Shown in pieces: positions 9,961 to 64,000 of a stretch of DNA of 64,000 nucleotides. The stretch is taken from contig NC_086380.1 of assembly GCF_036588685.1 (NCBI RefSeq), forward strand, positions 21,638,001 to 21,702,000, read 5' to 3'. The position numbers and the translations under genes are program-made. The DNA is from Mytilus trossulus. Its lineage: Eukaryota. How positions within the stretch are numbered: position 1 is the stretch's first letter; every line of letters begins with the position of its first letter. Below the pieces are notes generated by a model, which saw only the letters and a list, made by a program, of their open reading frames with translations, made no database searches and was not told where the DNA came from.

Positions 9961-11738
9961 CCGTACTAGGACAATGGTGTAACAGTACGAAATCAAAATT
10001 ATAAACGGGATAATCATTTTTTATTTATTAGTTGTAGTTGTTTTAAAGATAGTGTTCAGTAGCTGTGGATACTATCATTTCGGTAAATGGAGCTTACTAA
10101 TATTTGGAAGTACTAGCTGTTTTTATGCTTCGTTTCAGTCTCACGAGTCAATCCCTATCTATCTGTTTAATTGTGATCATGATCATTTGATAAACATACT
10201 TCTATGATTGGCTATAACTTGGATATTTATAAAAACTATGTATCATAGATATGCATGCGTAAAATAAGTTCTCGACATAAACCGGCTGAAATATAAAACA
10301 AGAATTAAACCTCACGTTATATATATACTTACGACGAAGAAGCCTCAAGCTATATATAATACATGTACTTACGACGAAGATTATGCCTCAAGCTATAGCA
10401 CTTATGATGATGATGATACTGATGTATGTCTTATATCCAGCAACAAATATTACATATATATTGAGGATGATGAAAATTAATTATAATGATAAATACATAT
10501 ACCTTTTTAAACATGCCCGACAATTAAGAGTAGCATTTTCATATGCTAGGTAACAAGAGAGCGTAACCACTATAAAGAAACACTTGTCTTTCTACGAGTA
10601 AACCAATACCTGCTCTTGCTCGTGAATGCATCATGCTTGTTGGAGAAGCCGAAAAATGCAGTCTTAAAGTCATTCGATCAGGGAGTCCAACATAATAATT
10701 GAATTTGTATTCGGGGCTAGCTTGCTACATGTACCAGTCAATTCCATATACAAGTATATAATTATGAATATAAAATGTGTTTTTATTTTCCAGTCGTGTA
10801 ACACCTTCACTGGTGATCCTGTCATTGGATCTGTCGCATAGTTGTCACTTTTATATATATATACCTCCAAAGCGAGACAAAAGTTGAAACTTATTTTTTT
10901 TTGCTAACTCAATCAATATATTCGATAGCTTTAGAATCTACTTCTAATTGAATAAATACGAGTAAAAGAAAATTCCCGTAAAGACTGAAGTGACATTATA
11001 GTTGTCTCAAAAATGTGACAACTATGTAAATTGACATTCTCATCCACTTTTAATTAGAAATACTTGGGGACAGGATATTTTTTAGCAAATTACTATAATA
11101 AGTTGATAGTTTACTATCCACAGTGGTCAATGCAGGTTATCAGTCATCAATTGATAATCAAGTACACCTTCTAAATTACAATCTAACGAATTGGTGTACA
11201 CATTTATTTACACGCATTATTATCAACTACATTTTTCCTTTTATAATGTTCGTTGACTTTCATTTGAAAGAAAAGAATACGTCAACTACTTAAATTTAAA
11301 GAAGTACATGACCTGTAATATATTTTTTTTAATATTCACTTCCCGTTGACGTACATTTTCCCTGTTGAATTTGTTTTTAGCAGATTGTAAATTGAGGAGA
11401 TTAAGTGCAGAGGGAGAGAACGTTTGAAATGATACTTAATAAAGTATGATGCAATCCCAGTTTTCAACTTTAACTGAGACACGTTCTGATTAACATTTTG
11501 AGCTCATTTTTTTCTGAAATTACGACAAAATCTATATAAATTAATACCCACGGAAATTAAATATTGTAAAACATAAAAAATCAAAAAGAAGAATCTATCT
11601 GATAACGACAAACAAAATCAATACAATTAAAATATCAAATAATAGGTTCATTAAATTTTATAATTTTATCTGAAAATCAAAGTCATTGTGAAAACCATGA
11701 AAGACAACTCCAATGAATCGTATGATAGGTAAAGATAT

Positions 11739-11977
11739 ATGTATTTTCCCGCGTTTCGGAGTATAGCGGGAAAATGTTGTCTAAAAGGAACGTTTTTATA
11801 AGAACGGTATATATATTTTTTTTTTGGCGGGTTTTGTTATGTGTAGTTGTACACGTGGATACGTGGACCAATCATTTGGATTGTTTCAATAAGTATTCTT
11901 ATGTTAATGAGGTGAAAGCGGGTTTTAAATGTTCTTGGGTTTGAAAATCATTCTAGCCGCAGACGTTCAACACTAAA
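11739..11977 (+). repeat. split direct repeat A1
   Basis: Matches 15815-16002 except for a ~47-nt segment and T-tract length; ends immediately before the gag ATG. Confidence 0.9.
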
Positions 11978-11978
11978 C

Positions 11979-13949
11979 ATGTCGGAGCCGGCAGAAATAA
12001 ACATGCTCATCGACCGAAAAATTAAAGACGCTATGAGTCAGAACCAGAACGAGATACTGCAGAGCATTGACAGATTAATGTCTAGTCGTTTAGACACGTT
12101 TCAGAGATCCGTCCACGAAACGCAGAGGCAGTTATCAGAAACTCAAATGTCTAAAATCCAGCAGATGAACACTGAGAATTACGTTTTCAAGCGAAAGGGA
12201 AACGAGGAGCAGTTCAAGGTCAACACAAAAATCGCCAACAAGATGAAAGAGGCCAGAAGTATTCTTACAGAATCGCAGGACAACAACGAAAGTACAGAGG
12301 GCGCGATGAGGAACATTTGTGAAGGTTTGGACATTCTTAATCATCGACAAAAATTAATTAAGCTCGCGGATCAGTCCGAGAACGGATGGAGAACAGTTAC
12401 AGAGTATGAAACGCACAACCTTGCAGATGACTCCGAAGACGAAAAACGTATAATACGAGCAGAAAACAAAGCGTCGAGGAAAATGAAGAGCGACAAAAAG
12501 TTTAAGACACGTACAACTCCTTACAGTGCCCCGCAGTCTACTCGATTCAGCTCAGTTAATCAACAGAGTACAGTTAACATTCCTGTGGTGCATCGACCCG
12601 GAAAATGTTATGAGTGTGGTATGTCAGGACATTGGAGGTCAGACCATTATAAACAGGGTTGGCAAACTCAGAAAGAAAAGTCTGATAAGATAAGTACTAG
12701 ATTATTTAGTAATGATTTATCTGTTAATTTTGGTAGAGAAAATGCTATAGTTTCATGTAATTCACCCGTAGGTAAATTAAGAAGTTCAATTGATTATTGG
12801 CGTAATGTTATTTGCGCTAACGAGACAGTTATTGATATCATAGAACATGGATATAAAATACCTTTTCACACAGAGCCAAGTGAGGTATTTTTGAATAATA
12901 ACAAATCGTCTTTAGAAAATTCAGATTTTGTAGAAAATGAGATTTTAAAGTTGATAGAATTAGGATGCATAAAAGAATTTTCATGTAAACCTAAAGTGGT
13001 CAATCCGTTGACGGTAGCTAACAATAAAAACAAATTAAGGTTAGTTTTAGATTGTAGACACATTAACCCACATCTTCATAAATTCAGATTTAAATATGAA
13101 GATGCTAGCGTAGCCAGTCAAATGTTTAAGAAGGGAGATTACTGTTTTACTTACGATTTGAGATCGGCTTACCATCATATAGAGATATTTGAGGCACACA
13201 AGACATATTTAGGTTTTGCTTGGGTCAAAAATCATGAAACAAAATATTATGTCTTTAATGTTTTACCATTTGGTATATCGACTGCTGGTTATATTTTCAC
13301 GAAAGTTGTAAGGTGTATTGTTAAACATTTACGAAATTCAGGTTTGAAGATTATCATGTATTTAGACGATGGCTTAGGCGGGGCTGACGAGATAAGTCAG
13401 GCTCATGAAACTAGCATAGTTGTTCAGAAAGTACTGAAAGCTTCTGGGTTTTTGATAGCAGAAGATAAATGCAATTGGACACCTAGCCAAAATGTGGTAT
13501 GGTTGGGTTTGGTATGGCAATTTGACAAAGGCATGGTTTCAGTCACGGAAAGGCGACTTTCCAAATTGTTAGATACTTTAAATAGAGTTATACACAAAAT
13601 AGGTAAAGGAGAAATACATGTTTCTGCAAGGTTTCTTGCTTCTATAATTGGTCAGATCATATCTATGCAAGGGGCAGTTGGTCCTGTAGTTAGACTACGT
13701 ACACGAAGTATGTATGAATGCATTTTGTATAAAGCAAGCTGGAATGCTAATGTTCTTTTGAACAGTAGATCTCTTGATGAGATAATTTTCTGGAAGGAAA
13801 ATATAGAGAAAATGAATGGCAGAGAATTGCATATTGTTGAGCAATACTCGAGTGTAGTATACACAGATGCCTCGGGCATAGGTTACGGTGGCTATTTGGT
13901 AAAAGCCATAGACGAAGAGATTATGGGTAGTTGGAACGATGGAGAATAA
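11979..13949 (+). CDS. Gag (coiled-coil, zinc knuckle) in frame with reverse transcriptase and the start of RNase H
   Basis: CYECGMSGHWRSDH knuckle; RT motifs KLRLVLDCR, YDLRSAYHHI, VLPFGISTA, MYLDDGL; RNase H VYTDAS; ends at a premature TAA. Confidence 0.9.
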   Translation: MSEPAEINMLIDRKIKDAMSQNQNEILQSIDRLMSSRLDTFQRSVHETQRQLSETQMSKIQQMNTENYVFKRKGNEEQFKVNTKIANKMKEARSILTESQDNNESTEGAMRNICEGLDILNHRQKLIKLADQSENGWRTVTEYETHNLADDSEDEKRIIRAENKASRKMKSDKKFKTRTTPYSAPQSTRFSSVNQQSTVNIPVVHRPGKCYECGMSGHWRSDHYKQGWQTQKEKSDKISTRLFSNDLSVNFGRENAIVSCNSPVGKLRSSIDYWRNVICANETVIDIIEHGYKIPFHTEPSEVFLNNNKSSLENSDFVENEILKLIELGCIKEFSCKPKVVNPLTVANNKNKLRLVLDCRHINPHLHKFRFKYEDASVASQMFKKGDYCFTYDLRSAYHHIEIFEAHKTYLGFAWVKNHETKYYVFNVLPFGISTAGYIFTKVVRCIVKHLRNSGLKIIMYLDDGLGGADEISQAHETSIVVQKVLKASGFLIAEDKCNWTPSQNVVWLGLVWQFDKGMVSVTERRLSKLLDTLNRVIHKIGKGEIHVSARFLASIIGQIISMQGAVGPVVRLRTRSMYECILYKASWNANVLLNSRSLDEIIFWKENIEKMNGRELHIVEQYSSVVYTDASGIGYGGYLVKAIDEEIMGSWNDGE

Positions 13950-14669
13950 TTGAAAAGTTCTACTTGGAGAGAGTTTGAGGCAGTTTATAGAGTACTGCAG
14001 TCTATATCTATGTCATTAAAAGGTCAAACAGTTAAGTGGCACACAGATAATCAAAACGTAGTAAACATAATAAAAAAGGGCAGCAAGAAATCTGATTTAC
14101 AAAATATTACAATTAACATAGCTAATGTATGTAAATTAAACTGCATTAAGATCGTACCAGAGTGGGTACCTAGACAAGAGAACGTTAAAGCAGATAAAAT
14201 TAGTAAGACTATTGATTGTGATGATTGGGAGATAGACGATATTACATTTGAATATTTTAATCAGAATTGGGGTCCACATACCGTAGATAGGTTTGCCACT
14301 GATTACAATGCAAAATGTAGCATATTCAATACCAAACACTGGTGTCCAGGTACACTGGGTATTGATGCCTTTAATAGACATTAGGGTAAAGAAAATAACT
14401 GGATTGTGCCACCACCTTCAGACATATCCCGATGTATACACAAGATTATCCAAGATAAAGCAGATAGCACGTTATTTGTTCCTTTATGGGTTTCAGCACC
14501 ATATTGGCCACTTTTACACAAAGTCAATGGTAATGTTGTAGAATTCGAATCGTTCATTAAAGATAGTAAAATATTACCATCAACAGTTATCAAAAAAGGC
14601 CGAGGTAGAAATGGTATGTTCGGAAAATCCACAGATTTCAGGATGTTGGCTATGAAAATAAGGTTTTAA
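13950..14669 (+). pseudogene. remainder of pol: RNase H plus DIRS-type methyltransferase-like domain, interrupted by TAG at 14382-14384
   Basis: Same frame as 11979. RNase H motifs SSTWRE, WHTDNQ, NVKADKIS; MT-like motifs TVDRFAT, GIDAF, NWIVPPP, APYWPLL. Confidence 0.85.
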
Positions 14670-14711
14670 TTTATTTCATTCTTTCCTACAGGTATCGGTC
14701 TGAAAAGCAGG

Positions 14712-15701
14712 GTGTTGGAGAAAATACAAGATGGAGGGATTCTTTCGGCTGACTTTGACGAATTGGGACATAAGATGTCATCGTATTTACTGCAGTCCAG
14801 AAGTGACAATACTAACAATAAATATTTTTATGCTTATAAACGGTGGGAGAGATTTATATTGAAACAAGGGGGACTATCTTTACCAGCAAAGCCTATACAT
14901 GTAGCCCTATATTTAACCAAACTGATAGACACAGGTTCATCTTATAGTGTAGTTCAGTCAGCTTTTTACGGTATAAAATGGGCACATACTGTTCAAGGTT
15001 TTTCAGATCCCACAGAAAATGCATTTGTGACCAATTTACTGGAGTCTTCTAAACGTCAACCACATAAACCGAAAGTTAAAAAGGAACATATTGATTCTGA
15101 ATCTATTATTGAACTTTGTATAAAATATAAAGACAGTGATGATATAGCTATTTTAAGGGATTTATGTATGATTGTTCTTAGTTTCTCTGGTTTTCTGAGA
15201 TACAACGAGCTTAGTTCTCTTCGATGTAAAGACGTTCATTTCAAAACTAATTATTTAGAGATTGATATTGACAAAAGCAAAACTGATCAGTATAGATTAG
15301 GGGAGAAATTAGTTATTTCAAATGGTGAGTCTGCTGCTTGTCCTTATAGTTTATTGTCCAAATATTTCAGTATTTGTAAAATTGAGTCCAGTTCTGAGCA
15401 ATATTTATTTAAACCTATTTTTAGATCAGGCAAACGGTGTTCGCTAATTTACAAGAACAAAAAACTGAGTTATACCAGAGCTAGAGAGTGTATAGTAGCT
15501 AGACTCAAAGAAGTTTGTGGTGATATAAACATAGGTTTACATTCTTTAAGGGCGGGTGGAGCCACTGTCGCAGCTAACGCTGATGTTAACGAACGCTGCT
15601 GGAAACGGCACGGTCGATGGAAATCTGATACTGCCAAAGATGGGTACGTGGCAGACTCACTTGCACATCGTTTAGAAGTTACTAAGAAGCTAGGTCTTTA
15701 G
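14712..15701 (+). CDS. tyrosine recombinase (YR) of the retrotransposon
   Basis: Catalytic set intact: FSGFLRYNE (R), KSKTDQ (K), HSLRAGGAT (HxxR), HGRWKS, DGYV (Y). The ORF is open from the pol stop at 14669; true start uncertain. Confidence 0.93.
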   Translation: MLEKIQDGGILSADFDELGHKMSSYLLQSRSDNTNNKYFYAYKRWERFILKQGGLSLPAKPIHVALYLTKLIDTGSSYSVVQSAFYGIKWAHTVQGFSDPTENAFVTNLLESSKRQPHKPKVKKEHIDSESIIELCIKYKDSDDIAILRDLCMIVLSFSGFLRYNELSSLRCKDVHFKTNYLEIDIDKSKTDQYRLGEKLVISNGESAACPYSLLSKYFSICKIESSSEQYLFKPIFRSGKRCSLIYKNKKLSYTRARECIVARLKEVCGDINIGLHSLRAGGATVAANADVNERCWKRHGRWKSDTAKDGYVADSLAHRLEVTKKLGL

Positions 15702-15755
15702 CATTTTCATTTTATTGTATATCATTTACGCTTTTCCGCCCTTTCTTTGTGTTTC

Positions 15756-16002
15756 TAGTCTGCACGGCTAAATGCATTGCTTTGTGTTTGTTATTATTGT
15801 AGTGTAGTTAAGACATGTATTTTCCCGCGTTTCGGAGTATAGTATTTTTTGGCGGGTTTTGTTATGTGTAGTTGTACACGTGGATACGTGGACCAATCAT
15901 TTGGATTGTTTCAATAAGTATTCTTATGTTAATGAGGTGAAAGCGGGTTTTAAATGTTCTTGGGTTTGAAAATCATTCTAGCCGCAGACGTTCAACACTA
16001 AA
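15756..16002 (+). repeat. split direct repeats B1 (15756-15814) and A2 (15815-16002); B|A circle-type junction
   Basis: B1 is identical to 16347-16405 and directly abuts the copy of the 5' repeat (GTTAAGAC|ATGTATTTTCCC). Confidence 0.9.
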
Positions 16003-16346
16003 ACTTCAATGTTTCATATTTGATATTGTATATTATTTTGCTGTTTTTTCTTGATGGAGTTTGGCATCAATGTCCCGAGGCGTGCCTTGCACTTGCTCCG
16101 AACACAGGTTTCCAAATCAATTTTCTTTAATAAAGTTTTTTGATGGTTTTTCCTGGGCGGCGAGGTTACGTTAAAGACGGATATATATACATACATACAT
16201 ACATACATAGAGATATGGGCTCTTATTGATACAGAGTAAACTTGTTTCAGATGTTTATTCTTTCTGTGTACCTCCTTTGGAATGTTTTTGTACTTCATAT
16301 ATGTCATGATTTATAATATAAAATATACATTAAACGCCGGCTCTGT

Positions 16347-16405
16347 TAGTCTGCACGGCTAAATGCATTGCTTTGTGTTTGTTATTATTGTAGTGTAGTT
16401 AAGAC
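16347..16405 (+). repeat. split direct repeat B2 (3' terminus of the element)
   Basis: 59-bp exact copy of 15756-15814. Confidence 0.9.
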
Positions 16406-16684
16406 GTATATATACGTGGTCTTATGACAGTGAAGTTTAGGCGGGAATATCAATAATCACGTGATATATAGAAATCATGATTTCTTCCGTTTTTCAGCAT
16501 CTTAGAAATATTTGATATTGATAAAATTTATTATGAATGCGTTTCATTGTTTTAGGAATACTTAGTTAAAACTGGGGTAATGCATTTAACAAAATTAATT
16601 GGTTAGCAATAACCGGTCCCGTTACGTGCGTACGTCGAGTTAGGTACGTATGTCATTTTATTGGAAATCTCTATTATGTCTTAT

Positions 16685-17800
16685 TAGAGATTTCCAATAA
16701 AATGACATACGTACGCACGTAACGGGACCGGTTATTGCTAACCAATTAATTTTGTAAAATGCATTACTTAAGTTTCAACTAAGTATTCATAAACTAGGAA
16801 ACCCATTCATAATAAATTTAATCAATATCAAATATTTCTTAGATGATGAAAAACGAAAGAAATCATGACTTTCATATATCACGTGATTCTTGAGATTCCC
16901 GCCTAAACTTCACTGTCATAAGACCACGTATATATACGTATCTTTACCTATCATACGATTCATTGGAGTTGTCTTTCATGGTTTTGACAATGACTTTGAT
17001 TTTCAGATATAATTGCAAAATTTAATAAACTTATTATTTGATATTTGTATTGATTTTGTGTGTCGTTATCAGATAGATTCTTCTTTTCGATTTTTAATGT
17101 TTTATAATATTTAATTTCTTATTTATCGATCAAAAAGGGGGAGTACGCGCTCTACTTCTGTATCCTCGGATGCAAGTTTAGGTATACTTCAACAAAAACT
17201 TCGCCCCATAATTTGGTATAGTTAAAGTCGAAAAAGTACATTTGAAAAATATATCATTGATATAAATTTCTGCCCACATCAAATTATCTTCAATTAAATT
17301 ATAGAAAAATATTATTTTGTTTTACAAGTCGAGTACACCTTTTACATTCGGGTGTGTTGGAATTTACTTTAAACGTTAAATCTTTTTAAAACAACAAAAA
17401 GGCAAGCTTCTTGCTTCGGAATTCGTTATTTCAATATTTGTATGCTAAATGTCGTCTTGGTAGTTTTTAAAATTCATAATGTGAGAAGAACTAAGATATG
17501 GGTCAAGTGAAATGACAAGAAATGATGGGTGTGTTTGATTACAAGTTGGTAATGTACTTGTTCCATTATAGTATTTATGTTAATAAAATCATTCAAAGTT
17601 TAATGACAAAATATTTAAAGAGTAAAAGAAATAGTTGTGGTTGATTTTTACTGAAGGCATATTCCAGCAACAATGCGTGTTCAAAGAGCAAAACATGCAT
17701 GCAGTGTATACTCCCCTTCGTCATGCTTCAATGCAGTAGGACGAAATACGTTGAGTTAGGTCGGTTATGTCGAGTAAAGTCATTTTATTGGAAATCTCTA
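16685..17800 (-). mobile_element. non-autonomous TIR element, copy 2 (1116 bp), inverted relative to copy 1; possibly Academ-like (TAG...CTA termini, 4-bp TSD)
   Basis: 22-bp TIR TAGAGATTTCCAATAAAATGAC; TTAT on both flanks (16681-16684, 17801-17804). Superfamily assignment is inference. Confidence 0.85.
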
Positions 17801-33872: not shown

Positions 33873-34257
33873 AAAACATGATATAAATCATATGTTCATC
33901 TTATCATTTTGCGTTTCACACTGAAATGAATAAAATCTTGATGTACAAGGTATATAGAACGATCGTGTTCCGGTAACATTGTGTTACAATCGATGACCAA
34001 GGTAACATCAATCGACATAGGTAACAAAAAACTAGTTCAACATGTTCAAACTTACAATCAAATTAACAGGTACAAATTAAACATGATAATAAAAATATAT
34101 AACTTATGTTTTAGCATGTTTCTTTTTTACGAATTGTTAAAATTTAATTTACTGCTTCCTGCGGCAAATCCGTATAAAAGATTTCCAGCTTCTGATTTTA
34201 GTCACAACTCGTCTTGTCCTCCTTGTATACTATACCCTCTCACTGCTACAGTTAAAG
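33873..34257 (+). promoter_or_regulatory. promoter (TATAAAA 34173-34179) and non-coding exon 1 (about 34200-34257) of Gly/Met-rich gene A
   Basis: TATA box about 25 nt before an Inr-like TTAGTC; donor AAAG|GTATGT; block conserved at about 46.9 kb and about 62.1 kb. Confidence 0.75.
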
Positions 34258-34892
34258 GTATGTTGTTTTATAGTAAATTATGATTTGCAGTTTACTTTTA
34301 ACGAAGGTTTGGATGACTTTAGAAAGATCTGGCTTCTATTATTAGGTCATATCGCTTTTTATGTGTTTTGTTTCTTAAACTTTTATGAGTTTGAGGATTT
34401 CATTATGAATAATTATTTTCCTGTTTGGTCAACAGAAACGTACTAGACAGAGAATTATTTTATCGTTTTGAATTGCAAATACAAAGTCAGAATCATTACC
34501 AATTAAACTTGTAAACTCGATTAAGGTTTTACTTATTTTTTTTTTAAATGTTTGATCTGATATTACGAAACATAGAAAACAATCAATATAATCTACTTAA
34601 AAAATGCTCGTTAAAAGTTTTTATAAGTACGACACAATCCTATTATTAACAAAACAAGGATTGAAATACGAAACATACCCAAATAGACAAGCAATAATTA
34701 AGCGAATTTCTAAAACGGAAGATATGAATTAAAAAAAATAGGTTGTTATTAATAGCTGCTTCCTTTGTGACTTAATAGTTTCTCTCGATTAAAAAATATA
34801 TAAAAAATATTGGTGAATATTGTCTACATTGAAAAAAGTTTAGAAACTGACACTTGCAAATTTAGACTTTGTAAATTCGATCTGGGTCTGGT

Positions 34893-35470
34893 TTTTCCAT
34901 TTATCCTTATCAATATTACTAGACCACTAAATCTCAAAACCAAGGAAAGTTTCTCCATTTATCCTTATCAATATTACTCGACCACTAAATCTCAAAACCA
35001 AGGAAAGTTTCTCAATTTATCCTTATCAATATTTCTAGACCACTAAATCTCAAAACAAAGGAAAGTTTCTCCATTTATCCTTATCAATATTACTCGACCA
35101 CTAAATCTCAAAACCAAGGACAGTTTCTCCATTTATCCTTATCAATATTACTCGACCACTAAATCTCAAAACCAAGGAAAGTTTATCCATTTATCCTTAT
35201 CAATATTACTCGACCACTAAATCTCAAAACCAAGGAAAGTTTCTCCATTTATCCTTATCAATATTACTCGACCACTAAATCTCAAAACCAAGTAAAGTTT
35301 CTTCATTTATCCTTATCAATATTACTCGACCACTAAATCTCAAAACCAAGGAATGTTTATCCATTTATCCTTATCAATATTACTCGACCACTAAATCTCA
35401 AAACCAAGGAAAGTTTATCCATTTATCCTTATCAATATTACTCGACCACTAAATCTCAAAACTAAGGAAA
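34893..35470. repeat. 58-bp minisatellite, about 10 copies, in intron 1 of gene A
   Basis: Unit CCATTTATCCTTATCAATATTACTCGACCACTAAATCTCAAAACCAAGGAAAGTTTCT, head-to-tail. Confidence 0.95.
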
Positions 35471-36683
35471 TGTAAGCGGTAATACAGTTTAGGAGGGAAA
35501 TCACTTAAAGGATACTTCTATTCAATAGACAAACAGTTCAAATATTACATTTATATGTTTATTATATTATACATTATAACACAGCTGAAAAGCAGTAACA
35601 AAACAAAAAGCTGTCGGAGTAGAATTTGATTGTCTAATGAATATTGTCATTACTAATAATTATTTTTATTTATTTTTTTAAACAATACTGAATTGAAATA
35701 TTTAAAAAATATGTCTGAACAGTTTAATGAATTGAAAAAAAGGAAAATAATACCATTCATTGACGGAAGGAAATAATAAAAAAATAATAAGATTAGTACA
35801 TAATTTTACTAAATTGATTGACATATGAATCAAAAGAAGTGTTGGATTCAATGTGGTAATTAAAACCGACAACACAAAAATATCATCCACACAGACTTCT
35901 AAATATCAATCATTTATGTTTGTCTTAAGTTGCTGCCCTTTTGATCTTATTTACAAAATTCTGCAAAATTGTTTTAAAAGAAGAGTTAATCAAGTTTGAA
36001 CATCCATGCGATTATGATTCCATTTACGCTAGCAAATGTACAGCACCAATATGTACGCCTATCTCTCATATAGTCGCTAGAAAGAGAAAGAGTCAATATA
36101 TTTGCATTTGTGAAATGACTTTGAAGTGTTTACATAAAAAAGTGAAACTACATTTTGAAAATAGAATAAATTAAACAACTATTTTTGTATGACATTTAGA
36201 CTTAATTTTAATGTTGTAATCGTTTTTTGTATTAAGTAGAACGCTTTGTGAACACTTTTCCTCTCCTACTGTGCGAGATAATTTCAGTTTCCTTAATATA
36301 AATTATTTTCATTATAAATGTCATCTAATAAACAACAAATACATTTAGAAAATAATATTTACGTGACATATATTGCCTTATAGTGAATATTATAGGTTTT
36401 ATATCATATTGTTATAAAGATTATTGTTAAGAAACGTTTTGCCAATTTATAATTGTTAATAAATTATACAAAAACCGATGGAATCTATAGATTAACACTT
36501 CTTTTTATGATGTTACTACATATCGTTATTACAAAAAAAAAATCAGCTTTGTTTGATTATGTAGAGAACAGATCTAAAATATCATAATGGCCTTGAATGA
36601 CATACTTTTCGGAACCACACAAAAAGAATGTTACTGATTGTTTGTTTTACTGACATTCTCTTGTTATGTTTCAGTCTTTCATT

Positions 36684-38813
36684 ATGAATCCAATTCAGAC
36701 CGTTGTCACATTCATTGCTGTCTTCGCCACAGTTAATGGTGCTGGTTATGGAAAAGGTGGCGGTATGGGCGGCGGTATGGGAGGTGGTATGATGGGAGGA
36801 GGAATGGGTGGCGGTATGGGCGGGGGAATGATGGGTGGTGGTATGGGAGGTGGTATGATGGGAGGCGGTATGGGAGGTGGTATGATGGGTGGTGGCATGG
36901 GAGGCGGTATGGGTAAGATGATGGGCGGTGGAATGATGGGAGGTATGGGAGGTGGTATGATGGGCGGTATGGGCGGTGGTATGATGGGTGGTATGGGTAT
37001 GGGTAAGATGATGGGCGGCGGTGGTATGGGCGGAGGAATGGGAGGTGGTATGATGGGAGGTATGATGGGTGGTATGGAGGGCGGTATGGGTGGTATGGGA
37101 GGTGGTATGGGTAAGATGATGATGCCAATGCCAATGCCAATGCCAATGCCAATGCCGATGCCAATGCCAATGCCAATGCCAATGCCAATGCCAATGCCAA
37201 TGCCAAAATCTATGCCAATGCCAATGCCAATGCCAATGCCAAAAATGGGAGGTGGTATGATGGGAGGCATGATGGGAGGTAAGTTGAACTAATATTGTTT
37301 TCTTTCTTTTAACTATTTATGTATTCCATTCAATGTTTTGCATGATGAACTTGGGGAACACACAGCTACCGCTAACATAAAAACAAACACCAAATACACG
37401 TGGCTATATTGATGACTCACAAATATGTCTAGCACGCTCTTGGTGTGAAATTCAAAATTTAAACTGAATTTTATTAATGCCTCAAAATTTAAGCTGAACC
37501 ATTATGTTTTCTCTTCTGAATAAACTGATATCATTAATAAAGAACAAGGTTTGGTCACTTTTATTTATGAACATTCAAATGTAAATTGTGTAATACTATT
37601 GAAATCACCCATAACTATTTGTTACATGTGTATATATAGTACATGAATGTAGTTTGAATTCAAATTCAAACATCGAAAGTTATATATTGATATGTTTCAT
37701 GTTTAAGAAAAAGAAATACACTTATTACTATAATATCATAAAAAACATCTTTATTGTTAATATTATTTATTTACTTGTTATGATATTTGATTTATGTCTC
37801 TTTTTTCATATAGGTATGGGCGGAGGAATGATGGGCGGTATGGGCGGTATGGGCGGAGGAATGATGGGAGGTATGGGCGGAGGAATGGGAGGAGGAATGG
37901 GAGGAGGAATGGGCGGAGGAATGGGCGGTAAAATGGGAGGTGGCAAAAGTAAGTGTTTGTTTATTGTAGCTTTATTTTGTAAGAATGCTCTATATATTTG
38001 CTTACATTCATTTTATTTGAACTTTGGCGAAGTTGTGTCATTGGCAATCATACCACATCTCCTTTTTATGTTGAATGTTTTGATACAAACAAACAAACCT
38101 AAGTATTACATTTATAAATATATTTTTTAATTGCAGGATACAGAAGAGCCACCGGTACGTATAACTCGCCCTCTATTTTTATATTAAAGAATATCATAAT
38201 TTCTTAAATTCTGCAAATTAAAGTACTGTGAATTCATTAATGTTCGTTGGGTACCAATTTTCGGGGATTTTCTCGGTCGAGTGAACTATGGAACTAACAG
38301 TTCAACGAACATCATTTTTTTATACTTTGACAATCCGCGAAACTAAATATCTACAAACATTCAAGTTTCCTTAATCCCAGAAAATTGGTACCCACGAAAA
38401 TAAAAAGAATCCACAGTAATTCAAACGTTCGTTGTCGTGTAATAGTCAGTGCTATTTGAATACTTTGCATCTTAATAAGATTGATTGAGTGATTAAATGA
38501 CTGAAGGGTTTGTTGACTGATTGATTGATTACTAAACGTGACATCTTCACAAATGCATTGTAGCAAATAGTGGACATCACATACATTTTTAGCCTCTCAT
38601 TTAAGAATCGAAATGAAATCATTGTTATATTCTATTAAATCAATTACATTGTACATGAAATTATTTGAAACTTTTATTTTCCTCGATTAACTTTTATCTC
38701 AAAAGTACATATCAAAGGGAAATAACCTGATATACACCTTTCGTTATTTTTTTTGGTCGTCTACTTATGTTGCTTTTTTCTTTCTTTCAGATTCTTATTC
38801 ATACGACTATTGA
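36684..38813 (+). CDS. secreted Gly/Met/Pro-rich structural protein A (256 aa); join(36684..37278,37814..37948,38137..38154,38791..38813)
   Basis: Signal peptide MNPIQTVVTFIAVFATVNG; (GGGM/GGMM)n; (MP)14-KS-(MP)5; phase-1 exons join to 771 nt ending GGKRYRRATDSYSYDY*; AATAAA at 38866. Confidence 0.88.
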
Positions 38814-40049
38814 ACAACGTCATTTAGATTGGATTAGTCAGAAACATTTCATCATTGTAATATATAATAAATGTTCATACATTCCTTGATTGTTTTTTCA
38901 TGATATTAATCACCAATATCGATTATTTTATATAAGAGTTTTGATTGTTGTAAATATGATAACATGTCATTCTCTACAGTAGAACATTTGCCATTATAAG
39001 AACTTTAGACCTGTAGAGGGTTGCAGCTAATTAAAACAAGTTTAACCCTGCTACATTCTGTATTTGTCTGTCCTATCGTTTGTAATTCAGTAGTTTCTTA
39101 ATGCCTGTATAACATATTTGTTTTTTCTGTTCTTTTTTTTGTTCATAAATCAGGCCGTTAGTTTATTCGTTTGAATTGTTTTACAATTGTCATTTTGGCC
39201 CATGAAAACATTAATCAAAATAGAAAACAAACAGGCTGTAAGAGCAGCAGCTTCTAAATTGCTCGATCGTGATTAAGGGAAGACGATATTGTTGGACGTT
39301 ATGTGTTTGTGAGTTCTCATTTCACCAATACAAGAGTGACACGACAACACTATTTTCTAACAAGGGAATTGTATTTATAAAAAAAAAGAAAATTGGGAAA
39401 ACGTCAATGAAATAAATTCTCAAAAGCACGAAGACGTCTTTTTGGTCAGTTTACCATCTCCTACGATTGACAAATGACATAATCGTATAACAAGCTTTCA
39501 TTTGCCTTCAGTTTAGATAAACAAACAAATTAACCCAAAGGACAGCAAATAATTAACATCCAAAAAATACACACCACATGAAAAACTGAAATGAAGTATC
39601 ATGAACCCTGATCACAACTAAGCGGAGTCATGTGTCAAATAAACGTAGACATATCCGTCTAAGTATTATGATGAGTCGTGTCCGATTATTAATCACCAAA
39701 AAAGAAAAGAGGAGGGCATGTTTGCTCTACGATACATAGACTATTGCTATGGTCATCCGTACAACAATATTCAGTTACTATCAACGATACAAGTCATGGT
39801 GTCAAATATAACACGTTCTATATCATGATTCATGTTTTCTATCACAAACTATTGGTGTAGTTCCTTTTAAAAAAAATAATAAATCATCTTATTTAAAATC
39901 CTGATAGAAATCTCAAGCCATTGTATCAAGAAATATATAAAAATACCGAACTCCAGTGTTACTTAAAAGAGGGGGAGTCTATCTAAACAGATTACATCAA
40001 ACGTAATCAATCAACAGAACGAGTGAAAAACAATTAACTGACTGTCGTA

Positions 40050-46789: not shown

Positions 46790-47098
46790 TGATTTGTCAA
46801 CCTCAGCATCGAGTGTACACTATTTCGTAACATATCAATTACAATCGATTACATACGTTACATCTATCGTACACTAGTTTGACATGCTAAAACTTATAAT
46901 TAATCTAACAGGTTCAAATCAAACATGATAATAAAGAGATATGACTGATGTTTTAGCATGTTTCTATTTTACAAGGCGTTAAAGTTGAATGCACTGTTTC
47001 CTGTAGTAGATTATTATAAAAGGGGTCCAGTCTCTGAATATGGTCACAACTTGATTGTCCTCCCTGATTACCATAGCATCTCACTGCTACAACTAAAG
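46790..47098 (+). promoter_or_regulatory. promoter (TATAAAA 47015-47021) and non-coding exon 1 (about 47042-47098) of Gly/Met-rich gene B
   Basis: Paralogous to 34000-34257; donor AAAG|GTAGGT. Confidence 0.75.
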
Positions 47099-48848
47099 GT
47101 AGGTTGTTTTAATAGAAATTTACTATTTGGTGATTTCACAATTTAACTAAGGTTTTGCCTCCATCAGATATTAATGACCCTAGATTGCTTGAGTTATTAT
47201 TTTAAAGTTATATGATTTTCCCCGATATTCATTTTTCATACATTTGTAGGTTTTAAATATCTAACTTTGAGTGTCCTAAATAAAGATTATTCCATAATAG
47301 CGCATCCGGCCAATACAATCTATAAAGTGGTCTTTTCATTTGTTTTCCATTCAGTATATGTTTATTAAATCAATAATCGAGGCTGCCAATTATTTCATTT
47401 CAAATTACATAAAACCTAATTTCATTAACTGCATAATTATTTTGAACACGGACATCTTTTTAGCTGCCACAAAAACCAAACAATATCTTTTTCAACTTAT
47501 ACTATACATTAATAGTAGTGAACAGTCTGGTAGATGCCATATTCAAAAACTATATTTAGTAGTATCTTTCTAAACACCAATATTTAATTTTCGTTTTCCT
47601 GAACAGAATTTACAAGGAAAATATAGAACCTTTATTCGATATATTTTAAATAAAAATATGAGGTCTGAATTACCACACATTTAACTTGGAAAATTCAATA
47701 ACTAGGCATTTTTCCTTGTTTTTATGAATTATGATCTGATTTTGCATACTAAGAATATGTTTAATATGCATCAAACTTTACTTCAACGTTAAGATGATAA
47801 AACCTCTGTTGAAAACATACATTTTATAACGAAAGGAAATAAGGCTGTTCATAACTTGATTAATATCTTTTTAACATATTTACAATAACCATTACATATT
47901 AGAAATGCAAATTACTTTCTTGAATCTGTTGTTACTATTCTAATGTAGGTTTAAAAAACATCAATTAAAACCAAAACATTATCATTAATTGTCTCTTCTA
48001 TATTTTACATATATTTATAGACATTCATATATCGCTACAATAAAAATGAATGTTGAACGTTATATATATGATTCGTCTGAAAACGTTATGAGGATAAACC
48101 AGGAGTGCTCAAACCAAACAAAGAAGTATTAAAAAGCAAGGAGGTTTAAGTATTTGAAGACATAAAAGTATATCACTAAATGTAGCTGAACTGTATCCTG
48201 TTATCTTTGGTTGTTGAATAGCAGTACAATATTAGAATAATTTATTGCAAACATTTTGAGACACATAGTAATGTGTAGATATATTCCATATTTTCGACAA
48301 AACCCATCTTCTGATATCATATTTCAAAATTCTTACTTTTTTCTTCTTACATAATTGTGGTTTTTTTTTCATTAAAAATCTATGCACATTTTAGAATTTT
48401 TGCATGACTTGTAGCTTGAAATATAACATGGTTACCCATAGAGATTTTATTAATAAGAATTATACATAAAAACAAAATTGGTTGGTCTTATCATTTATTT
48501 TTATTCTATCATGTCTATAGATCACTAAAATATATTTCATGAATATTCTTATTGCCTAAAACTGTTTCAATAATAATAGATACAAGGAATGAGTTTAAAT
48601 TCCCTTTTTTGTTTCTTGCCTCTTGCGCAAAAATTAATCAGTGTTAATATATTACACATGTTACACGATGTCAGGAAAGCAAAACACTATCTTCTATAGT
48701 TTAATATCTTTTGACTTACACATAAACAGTTCACAAATCTAATAAAATTATTTTCAATATTATCAGACAATCAATAAAAAACAAATGAATTGCAAATATT
48801 TGTTTCTTTTACTAACAATCATTTCGTCTTTTATTTCAGTCTTTCATA

Positions 48849-50064
48849 ATGAATCCAATTCAGATCGTTATCACATTTATGGCTGTCTTCGTCACAGTTA
48901 ATGGTTTTCCCTACGGTGGCGGTATGGGCGGCGGTATGATGGGTGGTGGTATGATGGGTGGTGGTATGATGGGTGGTATGGGTATGGGTAAGATGATGGG
49001 CGGTGGAATGGGAGGTGGAATGGCCGGTGGTATGGGCGGTGGAATGGGAGGTGGAATGGGCGGTGGAAAAGGTATGCAGATGGAAATGGAAGCCGCTCCG
49101 GGTGGAATGGGAGGCGGTATGGGTGGAATGGGTATGGAGGTTGAAATGAAACCCGCTCCAGCTGCTGGTAACAAGATGGGCGGTGGAATGGGCGGTATGG
49201 GTGGTGGTATGGGAGGCGGTATGGGAGGAATGGGTATGGAGGTTGAAATGAAACCTGCTCCAGCTGCTGGAAGCAAGATGGGCGGTGGAATGGGCGGCGG
49301 TATGGGAGGTGGTATGGGAGGAATGGGCGGTGGAATGGGTATGGAGGTTGAAATGAAACCCGCTCCAGCTGCTGGTAACAAGATGGGCGGTGGAATGGGA
49401 GGCGGTATGGGAGGTGGTATGGGAGGAATGGGCGGTGGAATGGGTATGGAGGTTGAAATGAAACCCGCTCCAGCTGCTGGTAACAAGATGGGCGGTGGAA
49501 TGGGCGGTGGAATGAGCGGTGGAATGGGTCAGATGATGATGATGCCGATGCCAATGCAAATGGCAATGCCACAACAAATGCCAATGCCAATGTCAATGAT
49601 GGGAGGTAATCAGAATTATTTTCTAAATTTAAATTACATTTTTCTTTTGTTTGTTTGCTGTACGGTCAAGAAACACAAAAGTCACCCTATTGTATAATCC
49701 ATTCATCGCTCGGAGATAATACAAATATATGTTAAGCATGATACCTCATACAAAAATAATTCACTTGTCATTTAAAATTAGTAAATTAAAAACGATCAAA
49801 TACGAATTGAATAAAAAAAAAACCAATGTAAATCGTGTCGAAAGTTTGTCATTACCTGTAATATATATCATGTCGTAAGTTTGACATTAAATGTAATATA
49901 TTTGAAAAAAAAATTAAATATATATTTCATGTTGAAGTTAAGGAAAGTAAAAACGTAAGATACCTACATAAACAAATCCACTTTGTATTGTGTTGAATAT
50001 TAATGTAAATCATTTTTTTATTTTAATTTGGTGGATATTGATAATCATAACACATCTCCTTATT

Positions 50065-50100
<36 letters not shown>

Positions 50101-52351
50101 GTTTATAACTATGTAAAGTGTTAATGGTATTATTTATTATTTTCCCTGTCATATAGGTATGGGCGGTGGAATGGGCGGAGGAATGGGAGGAATGGGCGGA
50201 GGTATGGGTAAGATGATGATGCCTATGCAAATGCAAATGCCAATGTCAATGCCAGAACCTATGCCAATGCCAATGCCAAATATGGAAATTGAAATGCCAA
50301 TGCCAAAGATGGGAGGTGGAATGGGCGGTGGTATGATGGGCGCCGGCATGGGTGGTGGTATGATGGGCGCTGGAATGGGCGCAGGAATGGGCGCTGGAAT
50401 GGAAATGGAAGGCGGTATGGGTGGAATGGGAGGAGGTATGGGCGGTGGAATGGGAGGTGGTATGGGAGGAATGGGCGCAGCTATGGCTAAAATGATGATG
50501 ATGCCACAACCTATGCCAATGCAAAAGCCAATGCCAAAAATGGAAATTGAAATGCCACCAGGAATGTCAAAAATGATGGGAGCTAAAATGATGGCTGCCA
50601 TGATGGGAGGTAAATACAATTGATTTTATTTTTTTCTCCTACTTTTCAATTAATTATTGCGCAAGCCGTATAGGAGAAAACACTAAATTCACCTTTTTGT
50701 ATCATCCATTCATTGATGTGACATAATATATATGTTTAAAGTATATACCTTTCACAAAAGATACAAAAACAGATTCATGCCGGTATATGAAGAACCTACA
50801 AATTAATACGAATATGAATACGAAAAAGAGTTACACAAAAATAAAAGTCATATTACTCTACTGTACATTTTATGATAATAAAATACATGTATATATTTAG
50901 ACACGAATATAAGCTAAGATAAAATTCATATATTTTAACGTTATACATGCATAAAAGTAAGATAAACATTATCATATTGACAAATGAAACGTTTATATTG
51001 TACAAATTATTTATCTACTTTTATTGATTATGTTGATGTGTATATGATGTTCAATATAAGTCTTGTTTATACATAGGTATGAGCGGCGGAATGGGCGGAG
51101 GAATGGGAGGAGCAATGGGCGGAGCAATGGGAGGAATGGGCGGAGGAATGGGAGGAGGAATGGCCGGTGGAATGGGAGGAATGGGCGGAGGAATGGGAGG
51201 AGGAATGGGAGGAGCAATGGGAGGAGCAATGGGAGGAATGGGAATGGGAGGCAAAAGTAAGTCATAGTTCAATCAAGATTTAATAAGGGAATACATGCCT
51301 TTTTTTCAGAGTATAAAGGATTTTATGATATGTTGATGAGTGACATGGTTCGGTTAAAAAAAAACAAATAATATCCGTTATAAAGTCGTTTGACCCTTTA
51401 TTTTGTTTGTGTCACTGAATTGGCATGGCTCATTTATATATTTTTTGGTTTTTGGTTCAAATAAATGTTTTGTGCCTACGTTTTATTTAACAATTTACGC
51501 GAAGTGAAACTAAATATGTGAAACGTCGAACCAGTGTGTTTAATTATCATAACTATCTTGTTTACGTTGTTAAGGAAAACTAATTCCGTCAACGTCGTCA
51601 ACTAATTAATGACTTCCAGATCCTCTACAAAATACCCTTTCAATCAATTATATTGACTTATTCTCTGATATGCAAATCATATCAGAATATTTTTTGTTAA
51701 TAATAAAGAACTATGGAATTGCTTATATCAACATTATTTGAACTGTTGTTGATGGTTACCTATTTGGCATTTATACAAAGTCTTTTTTATAATTTAAAAT
51801 AGAATGTGTTAATATTTATAATTCTTGTATCAGAATAAAAGTCAATAAATTGATAAACATGTATTATTTTTAAATTGCAGGATATAGAAGAGCTACTGGT
51901 ATGTAGAACCATCATTTACATTTATTTAGCAGGCTATAATTATTTCTTAAAAGGGCATTACACGATTTTGTTTCAGATTCAAGTTTTATTATCCTCAGAC
52001 ACTAGCATTGTACAAATGGTCAATATACATACATCAATACATAAATGAATAAATGATCTATACCTGTATACAGTAACTACAATATAATGAAATAAACATA
52101 AGAGGTACGACAATAGAAGCTAACACACTTTTAACAAACACGTGGTAGTGGTAGTCAAATCAAATATCTTGTCAAAGATTTTTGTAAAATAAACAAGCCA
52201 AATCTATTTTAGTCGAAGAGTTGTGTACCCCTTAGTAAGAAAAAGGATACATATACTAAAGTAGAAAAAAAGTGGAAATAAATTTAATATTTGATGTTTA
52301 CTTATGTGGACCTTTTCTTTTCTTTCAGATTCTTATTCATATGATTATTGA
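48849..52351 (+). CDS. secreted Gly/Met/Pro-rich structural protein B (476 aa); join(48849..49605,50157..50609,51077..51256,51881..51898,52329..52351)
   Basis: Signal peptide MNPIQIVITFMAVFVTVNG; GGM repeats; 4 x GMEVEMKPAPAAG(N/S)K; MP tracts; joins to 1431 nt ending GGKRYRRATDSYSYDY*; AATAAA at 52404. Confidence 0.88.
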
Positions 52352-58399: not shown

Positions 58400-58680
58400 G
58401 GAATGCTGGCATCCCAAAATATCTAGATGCTGGTATCCGAAAAATGTCTGGATGCTGGCATCCAAAAATATCCGGATGCTGGCATCCCCAAATATCCGGA
58501 TGCTGGCATCCCTAAATATCCGCATGCTAGCATCCCCAAATATCCGGAGGCTAACATCCTGAAATGTCTGGATACTGGCATCCCATAATATTCGGATGCC
58601 GGCATCCAAAAATGTCTGCATGCTGTCATCCCAAAATGTATAGATGCTAAAATATTCGGATTCTAGCATTCCAAAATATT
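58400..58680. repeat. 24-bp minisatellite with an internal palindrome, about 11 copies
   Basis: Unit GGATGCTGGCATCCCAAAATATCC; GGATGC-TG-GCATCC is self-complementary. Confidence 0.85.
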
Positions 58681-61934: not shown

Positions 61935-62233
61935 AAATTTGTCAACCTCAGCGTCAAGTATATACTATTTTGTAACACGTATATTACTATCGAATACCAA
62001 CATAACATCAATCATACCGTGTAACAAGAAATAGTTTGACATGTTAAAACATACAATAAAACTAACAGGTACAAGTTAAACATGATCACATAAAACTACT
62101 ACTTATGTTTTAGCATGTTTATATTTTACAAGTTGTTAAAGTTGAATTTACTATTTCCTGTGTTAAATTCTTATAAAAGATGTCAAATTTCTGATTATGG
62201 TCACAATTGAACTTGTCCTCCCTACAGCTAAAG
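61935..62233 (+). promoter_or_regulatory. promoter (TATAAAA 62172-62178) and non-coding exon 1 (about 62199-62233) of a predicted third Gly/Met-rich gene
   Basis: Collinear similarity to both other promoters; donor CTAAAG|GTATGT. Confidence 0.7.
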
Positions 62234-63745
62234 GTATGTTGTTTGTATTTGAATTTAAGATATGGATTTTAACAGATAATTTTTGTGTATCCTCCATTAG
62301 GCGACAATGTCCTTAATGTTTGGCTATACATTTTTGTCAATTTGTTCATACGGCTAGATGTTCATGGGATTTGTATTTCTAACACACCCTTAGTTTCGCT
62401 TTAAAGGTTCAAGACGAAAAAAAAACCCAAAAAAACAAAAAAAACAAAAAAACCTAGTGTAATCATAAAAGTGAAAAGGGATAGAAGTAAATATCATTGT
62501 AAAATATATTTTGTGTCTTTCAATTCATTCGGTACATACCTTCAGTGAATAAATAAATTATGGAACCATATACCAATGAAATGTAAATGATCAAGTGATT
62601 GAAATCTTTTTGTTAACCAAATATATTAACAATAAGCATGAATCGTAATTAATACTTATTTATCTTGTGAATGTGTGATTATTTATATCATGAATATTAA
62701 TGTTAGTTAATTTATCTCCTGTAGGATTCAAAACCTTTCTATTTGAATTTCATTTTAAAACACCCAAAAAAACAATGTTAGATTTAGATTTAAAGTGTCG
62801 TGTATATTGTACTTTACTTTATAGAAGCTAACATTTACAAATAGCTAAAATCAAAATGACATACACACTTTAAAAATATGATGCGTCCGATGGAATATGT
62901 TAAAGTTATCACTAAGAGACCTACCATTGTACTTGCTGACTTTTTTAAAAACTAACTACATTGAATTATTGATCTTTTGTCATTCCTTCGATTTTGCTTT
63001 GCTTTTTGTTATATTTTAATCAACTGTTTAATGGTTGTTGTAATACATTTTGTGTTTTAAAAACTTTTGCCCTAGAGACTAAACTAAGACATATAATCAT
63101 TAAGATGTGCCCCTTATGCAGTAAAAGCAGAACCGTTTGGATATTGTAAAAAATGTCATAAAATCGCAATAAAGAAGAAGAAAATGCCGTCGAAGTAGAA
63201 TTAAATTGCCTTTTAGACATTTGTAAAGGAGATATTAATTTTTTCTAAAACATTCTACTAAGTTTTTAAATGTATTCTGTAAAATGTTGAGCAAATGCAA
63301 AATTTTGAAAGTTTATAAAATCTAATATGAAACATATACCTATTTTCAATTCCTTTGAAGCTAACATATTTACAGTGATACTATACATATATACAATAAA
63401 AAATAAAGTAAACAGACTTCTTTTTTCGTATAAAAGTTGCCTTTATTTCTTTATATCTATTGTTCCTGTTTGTTTTGTTAACGCATCATTGTCAAATTGA
63501 GAAATTAGATGCGACTGTCATACAAACGAGAGGTTAAGCTTGCTATACAACGAGGTTTAATCCACATTTATTCTACATAAGGACATAACTGTACCGAGTC
63601 TGGAATATGACACACTCTATTCATTTGTTTGATGTGTTTGTGATTGAGCTTTTGATTTTGCATTTAGATTATGGTCTTATCTTTATATATTTCTTCTGAG
63701 TTCAGTTTTTTGTGATATTACTTTAAACAACGTTACAGTTCACTG

Positions 63746-64000
63746 TTTCAGTCTTAAACTCCCTAACATGAAATCAATTTCCTTATAAGAAATTCTTCTC
63801 ATCATAAGTGCAATCTGAGTATTATCCAAGACTTTTTCAGTCTTAAACTCCCTAACATGAAATCAATTTCCTTATTAGAAATTCTTCTCATCATAAGTGC
63901 AATCTGAGTATTATCCAAGACTTTTTCAGTCTTAAACTCCCTAACATGAAATCAATTTCCTTATTAGAAATTCTTCTCATCATAAATGCAATCTGAGTAT
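63746..64000. repeat. 89-bp tandem repeat, about 2.9 copies, running off the window end
   Basis: TTCAGTCTTAAACTCCCTAACATGAAATC... repeats with period 89 (G at 63751, 63840, 63929). Confidence 0.93.

Follow-up and report, generated by a model that had tools for sequence, protein, structure and literature searches.

A three-gene family of Gly/Met-rich proteins in Mytilus trossulus with a conserved C-terminal tail on two tiny exons, a possible processing module

Met/Gly-rich proteins are known from the ligament and nacre of bivalves, both of which are aragonitic (PMC9999432, PMC7591529, PMC5105077). These include abductin, a hinge-ligament elastomer of Argopecten with GGFGGMGGGX repeats, terminal Tyr and a chain thought to behave as a random-coil or polyproline II (PPII) elastomer (PMC9999432, PMC13052691); the M- and G-rich nacre protein MRNP34 (PMC5105077); and LMP together with other Met-rich insoluble proteins from the ligament, nacre and prisms of Pinctada (PMC7591529). 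The cross-linking and function of abductin, MRNP34 and LMP are called unknown or enigmatic in the literature, the former word being used for the cross-links of abductin (PMC9999432, PMC13052691) and the latter for the function of MRNP34 (PMC5105077). Pinctada fucata also has a ligament intracrystalline peptide (LICP), pQPDHEGTYDY, an acidic peptide of 10 residues that binds aragonite {110} through D3, D9, Y8, Y10 and its terminal carboxylate and shapes nanofibres with a Met-rich matrix (PMC13080008). Here we describe a stretch of 64,000 nucleotides from the mussel Mytilus trossulus (contig NC_086380.1, positions 21,638,001 to 21,702,000, forward strand; hereafter the window), which contains two complete genes (A and B) and the beginning of a third (C) of a family of Gly/Met-rich proteins with a shared C-terminal tail. 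This tail is encoded by an 18-nt micro-exon and a 23-nt last coding exon segment, and may be a processing module that would yield a peptide resembling LICP.

Exon structure of the tail and size of the family

Protein models for translation and codon counts were made by concatenating exons by script. The joined exons form uninterrupted frames of 256 amino acids (aa) in gene A and 476 aa in gene B, both ending in GGKRYRRATDSYSYDY-stop, and the introns of the family genes are of the eukaryotic type with canonical GT-AG borders. The end that A and B have in common, GKRYRRATDSYSYDY-stop, is carried by the micro-exon and the last coding exon. In gene A, exon 2 specifies a predicted 19-aa signal peptide and AGYGK, then Gly/Met repeats together with an (MP)n block, and exon 3 ends in ...GGK plus the first base of an Arg codon; the micro-exon then supplies the rest of Arg, Y-R-R-A-T and the first base of an Asp codon, and the last coding segment the rest of Asp, S-Y-S-Y-D-Y and TGA. 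The plan of gene B is that of gene A with one additional repeat exon. As the micro-exon completes the Arg codon and opens the Asp codon, neither tiny exon can show in a list of open reading frames (ORFs). A preliminary description of this DNA had placed both tail exons in A and B at the positions given in Table 1 and had called them invisible in the ORF track; splice sites and joined frames agree with the former statement, and the small size and split codons of the exons with the latter. At 18 nt the micro-exon is frame-neutral, and the product of skipping it would end in ...GGK-NSYSYDY.

In order to examine splicing we used public runs that contain parts of gene A, and placed the contigs of four runs on positions 37300–39100 (gene A only). 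In run X1, the predicted splicing of exon 3 to the micro-exon and of the micro-exon to the last exon is seen in one 132-nt contig (depth 5). This contig matches 37863–37949, then 16 letters of the micro-exon, then 38790 onward, with a G shared at each boundary, and within the micro-exon it reads ACT for genomic ACC, a synonymous difference. As this contig is spliced, run X1 is taken to be RNA. Two more X1 contigs over 38790–38871 end at the AATAAA signal. Run X11 has, before 37812, a loose contig end that corresponds to the last 30 bases of exon 2 and supports the exon 2/exon 3 junction (37814). No contig over the tail was found at ≥ 90 % likeness in runs X6, X11 and X15, contigs being a measure of presence and not of absence. 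The junctions across the micro-exon, which had been proposed as a check, are present in the X1 contig, and we conclude that the tiny exons are genuine coding exons, spliced into RNA for gene A. Separately, pieces of the introns beside the gene A micro-exon (38031–38069 upstream; 38223–38270 and 38366–38425 downstream) had very high summed contig depth, up to ∼63,000 in run X6 and high in all four runs, with contigs that continue beyond them into unrelated DNA. It looks as if an abundant dispersed repeat, similar to short interspersed or miniature inverted-repeat transposable elements (SINE/MITE-like), is transcribed elsewhere and has left fragments here, and not as if the introns were expressed.

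Genome-wide searches covered the whole assembly (1.3 Gb, 541 contigs). Using the exon pattern, we identified a third tandem paralogue, gene C, 14 kb downstream of gene B and just past the window, with a predicted protein of 227 aa that ends in GGKRYKRATDSYSYDY-stop. The tail had been described as an invariant module; its peptide is indeed the same in A and B, but the YKRAT of gene C makes it nearly, not strictly, invariant, through a single replacement (RYRR to RYKR) that leaves R-X-[K/R]-R intact. In the genome, DSYSYDY-stop, sought with a fully degenerate pattern, was matched at three places, all in the tandem cluster (reversed control, 0), the signal-peptide exon exists in exactly three genome copies, and both tiny-exon patterns have 2 occurrences in the window, compared with 0 expected from shuffles. 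Thus, we are dealing with a three-gene tandem family, not with a branch of a large superfamily that has the same tail. Two kinds of further match were rejected: one to the micro-exon pattern on contig C4 (2 mismatches), with no Gly/Met exons or tail exon nearby, was put down to chance, and the 3-mismatch matches of the last-exon pattern at other places were noise, rich in A and T and roughly as common as those of the reversed control.

The features of the three genes are listed in Table 1. The sequence around the upstream blocks of genes A, B and C does not align, and the poly(A) context TATAATAAATG is common to all three genes.

Table 1. Positions of the features of genes A, B and C. Positions are those of the window, except for the entries with a G000:C8 prefix, which lie past its end. 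A slash marks a splice boundary
Feature	Position	Strand	Remarks
Gene A upstream block (promoter and non-coding exon 1)	33984..34310	+	Identity to the B and C blocks 77–80 %
Gene A exon 2	36675..37278	+	ATG 36684; acceptor TTTCAG/, donor GGAG/GTAAGT
Gene A exon 3 (last Gly/Met repeat exon)	37814..37948	+	ATATAG/ ... AAAA/GTAAGT; covered by transcript contigs
Gene A micro-exon, 18 nt	38137..38154	+	TTGCAG/ ... /GTACGT; in X1 contig
Gene A last coding exon segment, 23 nt	38791..38813	+	Acceptor TTTCAG/ (TTTCTTTCAG/); X1 contigs 38790–38871
Gene A 3′ untranslated region (UTR) to poly(A) signal AATAAA (38866–38871)	38814..38871	+	X1 contigs stop at 38871
Gene B upstream block (promoter and non-coding exon 1)	46792..47155	+	Aligns with the A and C blocks
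Gene B exon 2	48840..49605	+	ATG 48849; signal peptide, FPYGGG, Gly/Met repeats, MEVEMKPAPAAG modules
Gene B exon 3, additional Gly/Met/Pro exon absent from genes A and C	50157..50609	+	Starts and ends in phase 1
Gene B exon 4 (last Gly/Met repeat exon), ending ...GGK	51077..51256	+	
Gene B micro-exon (R)YRRAT, 18 nt	51881..51898	+	
Gene B last coding segment (D)SYSYDY-stop	52329..52351	+	Poly(A) signal 52404–52409
Gene C upstream block	61937..62271	+	Aligns with the A and B blocks
Gene C remainder, past the window	G000:C8:21702372-21704458		Exon plan as in A and B
Gene C micro-exon (R)YKRAT	G000:C8:21703878-21703895		
Gene C last coding exon, same as that of gene A	G000:C8:21704436-21704458		

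A number of simple repeats accompany these genes. Intron 1 of gene A contains, between the promoter block and the ATG exon, a 58-bp tandem repeat (34891–35470; 10 copies, 95 % identity), and intron 1 of gene C an 89-bp tandem repeat (63742–64000; at least 2.9 copies, 98 % identity) that runs off the end of the window. A 24-bp tandem repeat (58403–58637; 9.8 copies) lies between genes B and C, and a run of ∼40 T is found in intron 2 of gene B (50060–50098), just upstream of the exon 3 acceptor. The region 11725–16950 has large ORFs of 656, 144 and 329 aa at 11979–15701, which are unrelated to the tail module.

Protein composition and selection on the tail

The proteins encoded by genes A, B and C (227–476 aa) contain 39–45 % Gly and 29–31 % Met, have Pro in blocks of (MP)n or MEVEMKPAPAAG, and lack Cys, Trp and His. 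At each N terminus there is a 19-residue hydrophobic signal-like segment that ends in V-N-G (judged by eye), followed by AGYGK in A and C and by FPYGG in B. Apart from one at residue 22, the third position of the mature chain as predicted, all Tyr lie within the final 12 residues, where there are four. Arg and Asp are present only in the tail. At pH 8 the tail is computed to be zwitterionic, with a charge of ∼+4 on GGKRYRR and of ∼−2 on ATDSYSYDY. The proteins are probably secreted, intrinsically disordered Gly/Met-rich matrix proteins. Between the paralogues, repeat exons come and go and both protein ends stay fixed; exon 2 of gene B holds four 105-bp repeats with MEVEMKPAPAAG (49122–49528, 91 % identity).

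Over the 15 tail codons, genes A and B differ by five synonymous and no non-synonymous changes (TAC/TAT twice, GCC/GCT, ACC/ACT and GAC/GAT), exactly as the preliminary description had claimed, corresponding to a synonymous divergence (dS) of 0.94 and a non-synonymous divergence (dN) of 0. The probability that all five random substitutions would be synonymous is ∼2e-4, or 2e-3 with transitions only. Gene C shows further synonymous differences (two from A and four from B) plus one replacement, Arg to Lys. Between A and B, residue changes amount to 0/15 in the tail and 4/19 in the signal peptide. The introns that flank the micro-exon align between A and B at 0.62–0.69, compared with 0.62–0.66 for shuffled sequence, which bears out a further statement of the same description, that the introns have diverged while the tail was kept; the 3′ UTRs of the paralogues align weakly. 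As the introns are saturated, the gene copies are old and the identity of the tails does not come from recent gene conversion. These codon comparisons indicate that the tail peptide is under strong purifying selection. The opposite pattern is seen in the signal-peptide codons (A 36684–36740, B 48849–48905), where dS is 0.08 and dN 0.10 (one synonymous and four replacement changes). This suggests nucleotide-level constraint near the 5′ end or more recent exchange, together with relaxed or diversifying peptide change.

It could be argued that the tail is an annotation artefact made of chance ORF fragments, in which case the tiny exons would be unused and transcripts would run on to the read-through stops. 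The small size of the exons, which keeps them out of ORF lists, speaks for this reading. Against it stand the spliced contig, the canonical splice sites, the synonymous-only divergence and three copies that are the only ones in the genome and share their relative position, and we give it hardly any credence.

Searches for related sequences gave little. When exon 2 of gene A and exon 2 of gene B were used in word-indexed searches, the only matches were to bacterial proteins, unrelated but with short stretches of GGM, and HMMER, run with exon 2 of gene B against 1.84 billion representatives, returned bacterial GGM-stretch proteins only. As the queries are of low complexity and mollusc proteins may be lacking from the libraries, these results are no sign that homologues are absent. 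A literature search with the word SYSYDY gave one irrelevant match only.

Candidate functions of the tail

The sequence R-X-[K/R]-R is the consensus of furin and other proprotein convertases, and G-K-R and R-X-R-R are classical processing signals. The basic site of the tail, K-R-Y-R-R/A in A and B and K-R-Y-K-R/A in C (the slash marking the predicted cut), fits this consensus as a motif match only, with an extra Lys at P5 in each case, and the sole replacement among the paralogues, Arg to Lys at P2, falls on the one consensus position that allows either residue. The predicted product is ATDSYSYDY, a peptide of nine residues that is acidic and Tyr-rich and has a free C-terminal Y-D-Y-COOH; its computed monoisotopic mass is 1083.403 ([M+H]+ 1084.411). 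The reading that we tentatively prefer, while giving it not quite an even chance, is that the tail is a processing module: a convertase cut would free a mineral-binding nonapeptide similar to LICP, and the Gly/Met chain would be left for end-linking. A furin-like convertase would act on the exposed K-R-Y-[R/K]-R site in the secretory pathway, and the site should be accessible, as the secreted chain is expected to be disordered. The nonapeptide would then behave like LICP and bind aragonite or amorphous calcium carbonate through its Tyr rings and the carboxylates of its Asp residues and C terminus, and mineral growth would thereby be coupled to the organic, Met-rich matrix. Once the basic residues are trimmed off, the polymer would have one Tyr per end (and a nearby Lys in A and C), free for end-linking. 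Cleavage of the tail and mineral binding by the nonapeptide are thus predictions from sequence, and the tissue concerned would presumably be ligament or nacre.

The precedent for mineral binding is LICP. ATDSYSYDY resembles LICP in length (9 vs 10 residues), in its acidic and Tyr-rich character, in having Asp at position 3 and in its free C-terminal Y-D-Y, and 4 of 9 positions match when one gap is allowed. LICP differs in its N-terminal pyroglutamate and in its His, Glu and Gly, whereas ATDSYSYDY starts with Ala in A, B and C. A further likeness would be the association with a Met-rich matrix in an aragonitic tissue, presumed in the mussel, where release of the peptide and its occlusion in mineral are likewise predicted. 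With the LICP peptide as query, a degenerate LICP-coding pattern had 0 genome matches at up to 3 mismatches. The resemblance to LICP is the most specific one found, and we treat it as a lead, not as proof.

Several points weigh against a processing module. Cleavage, the free peptide and the expressing tissue are matters that we infer. The RNA support consists of one 132-nt contig at depth 5 from one run, and the RNA status of that run is itself a guess. The likeness to LICP comes down to three terminal residues, one Asp and overall character, was recognized post hoc and may reflect convergence or chance; that LICP is the C terminus of a larger precursor was reportedly found by Suzuki et al. 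in 2015. Finally, the restriction of Tyr to both ends of the chain also fits a retained tail.

Retention of the tail as a cross-linking or anchoring handle is the main rival of the processing module, and we regard it as a distinct possibility, if well short of probable. The mature protein would in that case end in ...KRYRRATDSYSYDY. The four Tyr and the Lys of the tail, with the N-terminal Tyr-Gly-Lys, would be the only reactive side chains of an otherwise inert Gly/Met chain, and their oxidation by tyrosinase or peroxidase (to dityrosine, by addition of 3,4-dihydroxyphenylalanine (DOPA)-quinone to Lys, or to methylene-bistyrosine) would end-link the chains into an elastic network. There has been speculation about such a role for the terminal Tyr of abductin and for the basic-Tyr C termini of shematrins and KRMPs. 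The distribution of Tyr and the lack of Cys in A, B and C agree with this. Moreover, the cross-links of abductin are suspected to be dityrosine of terminal Tyr or methylene-bistyrosine (PMC9999432, PMC13052691), shematrins and KRMPs have conserved C termini of the RKKKY/RRKY type beside Gly-Tyr cross-linking domains (PMC3896809), and in Pinctada the insoluble, Met-rich fraction of the matrix has tyrosinase as a major component (PMC7591529). On the other hand, an exposed K-R-Y-R-R or K-R-Y-K-R is by textbook consensus a near-optimal convertase substrate, so that its intact survival would need explanation, and cross-linking alone does not account for the fact that Ala, Thr, Ser and Asp are strictly conserved, nor for the exact order of the residues. 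The retained handle and the processing module nevertheless overlap and differ only over whether the cut happens, as Tyr245 stays on the polymer after cleavage.

The charge split of the tail, ∼+4 and ∼−2, and the confinement of Arg to it would also suit an electrostatic or cation–π sticker, in which zwitterionic tails pair head-to-tail or bind chitin or matrix proteins. The outcome would be coacervation or ordered assembly of the Gly/Met spacers, in keeping with the stickers-and-spacers logic of low-complexity proteins, or else the tail would direct sorting or packaging within the secretory cell. Such a sticker requires neither the exact R-X-[K/R]-R spacing nor the terminal YDY, and we consider it improbable.

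Tyr next to Asp fits sulfation motifs. Along with the processing signals G-K-R and R-X-R-R, this would be in line with a bioactive precursor of the neuropeptide type, in which GKR cleavage is accompanied by amidation upstream and the nonapeptide is a sulfated signal. However, the carrier is a Gly/Met polymer of 227–476 aa with variable repeats, its genes are arranged in tandem and resemble those of structural proteins, each protein has a single copy of the peptide, no receptor or neural context is known, and the Gly ahead of K-R is merely the end of a GGM repeat. A signalling role is, as a result, very unlikely in our view.

In the preliminary description, processing had been proposed to release the nonapeptide as an assembly switch or cross-linking handle, or for a mineral-binding or signalling role. 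The processing module agrees with the coding nature of the exons, the purifying selection, the retention of R-X-[K/R]-R in gene C and, for mineral binding, the precedent of LICP, whereas amidation and signalling fit the gene architecture poorly. With the tail spliced into RNA and under selection, that interpretation is overall partly supported. An extended version of the processing module, which we consider doubtful, is that one precursor provides both a Tyr-ended elastomer chain and an LICP-like, aragonite-shaping nonapeptide at a fixed 1:1 ratio, and that YDY-COOH is a device common to mussels and pearl oysters, distant pteriomorphs, on unrelated carriers. Should the nonapeptide prove to be set free and to bind aragonite as LICP does, a single gene would give rise to both a framework protein and an intracrystalline peptide, and a second, naturally varied YDY-COOH peptide would become available for materials comparison with LICP.

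Comparison with known bivalve matrix proteins

The architecture of the family is unusually clean, with an inert Gly/Met chain that has reactive or charged residues only at its two ends, and with a C-terminal end that appears to be strictly selected and has two exons of its own. It narrows the question of how elastomer is linked to elastomer, and elastomer to aragonite, to a module of 15 residues. Judged by composition, the proteins resemble abductin, MRNP34 and other Met-rich bivalve matrix proteins, which seem to be the closest known.

Abductin, reportedly the subject of work by Cao, Wang & Bayley in 1997, was compared by description, not by sequence. The family shares with it an N-terminal secretion signal, a Gly/Met-rich low-complexity chain, Tyr at the chain ends only and few Lys. 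Abductin, however, is a protein of 136 aa in which Gly makes up ∼58 %, the repeat unit is the decapeptide GGFGGMGGGX, the N-terminal domain is rich in Ala and two Cys are present. The family proteins instead combine GGM/GGGM/GGMM repeats that lack Phe with blocks of (MP)n and MEVEMKPAPAAG, have no Cys and end in a basic-acidic Tyr tail that has two exons to itself. MRNP34, again compared by description, is likewise secreted, M- and G-rich and of low complexity. The other Met-rich matrix proteins, such as LMP and the Met-rich region of NU-5, include M/P/K-rich types and are insoluble (PMC5105077, PMC7591529). Pinctada LMP was considered as a relative and rejected, as it consists of MMMKPD repeats, ends in ...TPYNLYQG and has no such tail.

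Shematrins and KRMPs are, like the family described here, secreted Gly-rich repetitive shell proteins in which the repeats diverge while a basic-Tyr C-terminal motif and the signal peptide are kept (PMC3896809). Their signatures (RKKKY, RRKKY and RKYKY) form the very end of the protein and are combined with Gly-Tyr repeats (PMC3896809), whereas the mussel proteins have Gly-Met repeats without Tyr, a basic cluster that lies nine residues before the end, and D-Y as their last residues. The family shares composition and logic with abductin and with the shematrins and KRMPs, but does not conform to the strict definition of either. Met/Gly-rich matrix proteins of bivalves and conserved C-terminal signatures are both already known, and genes A, B and C represent another family of that kind.

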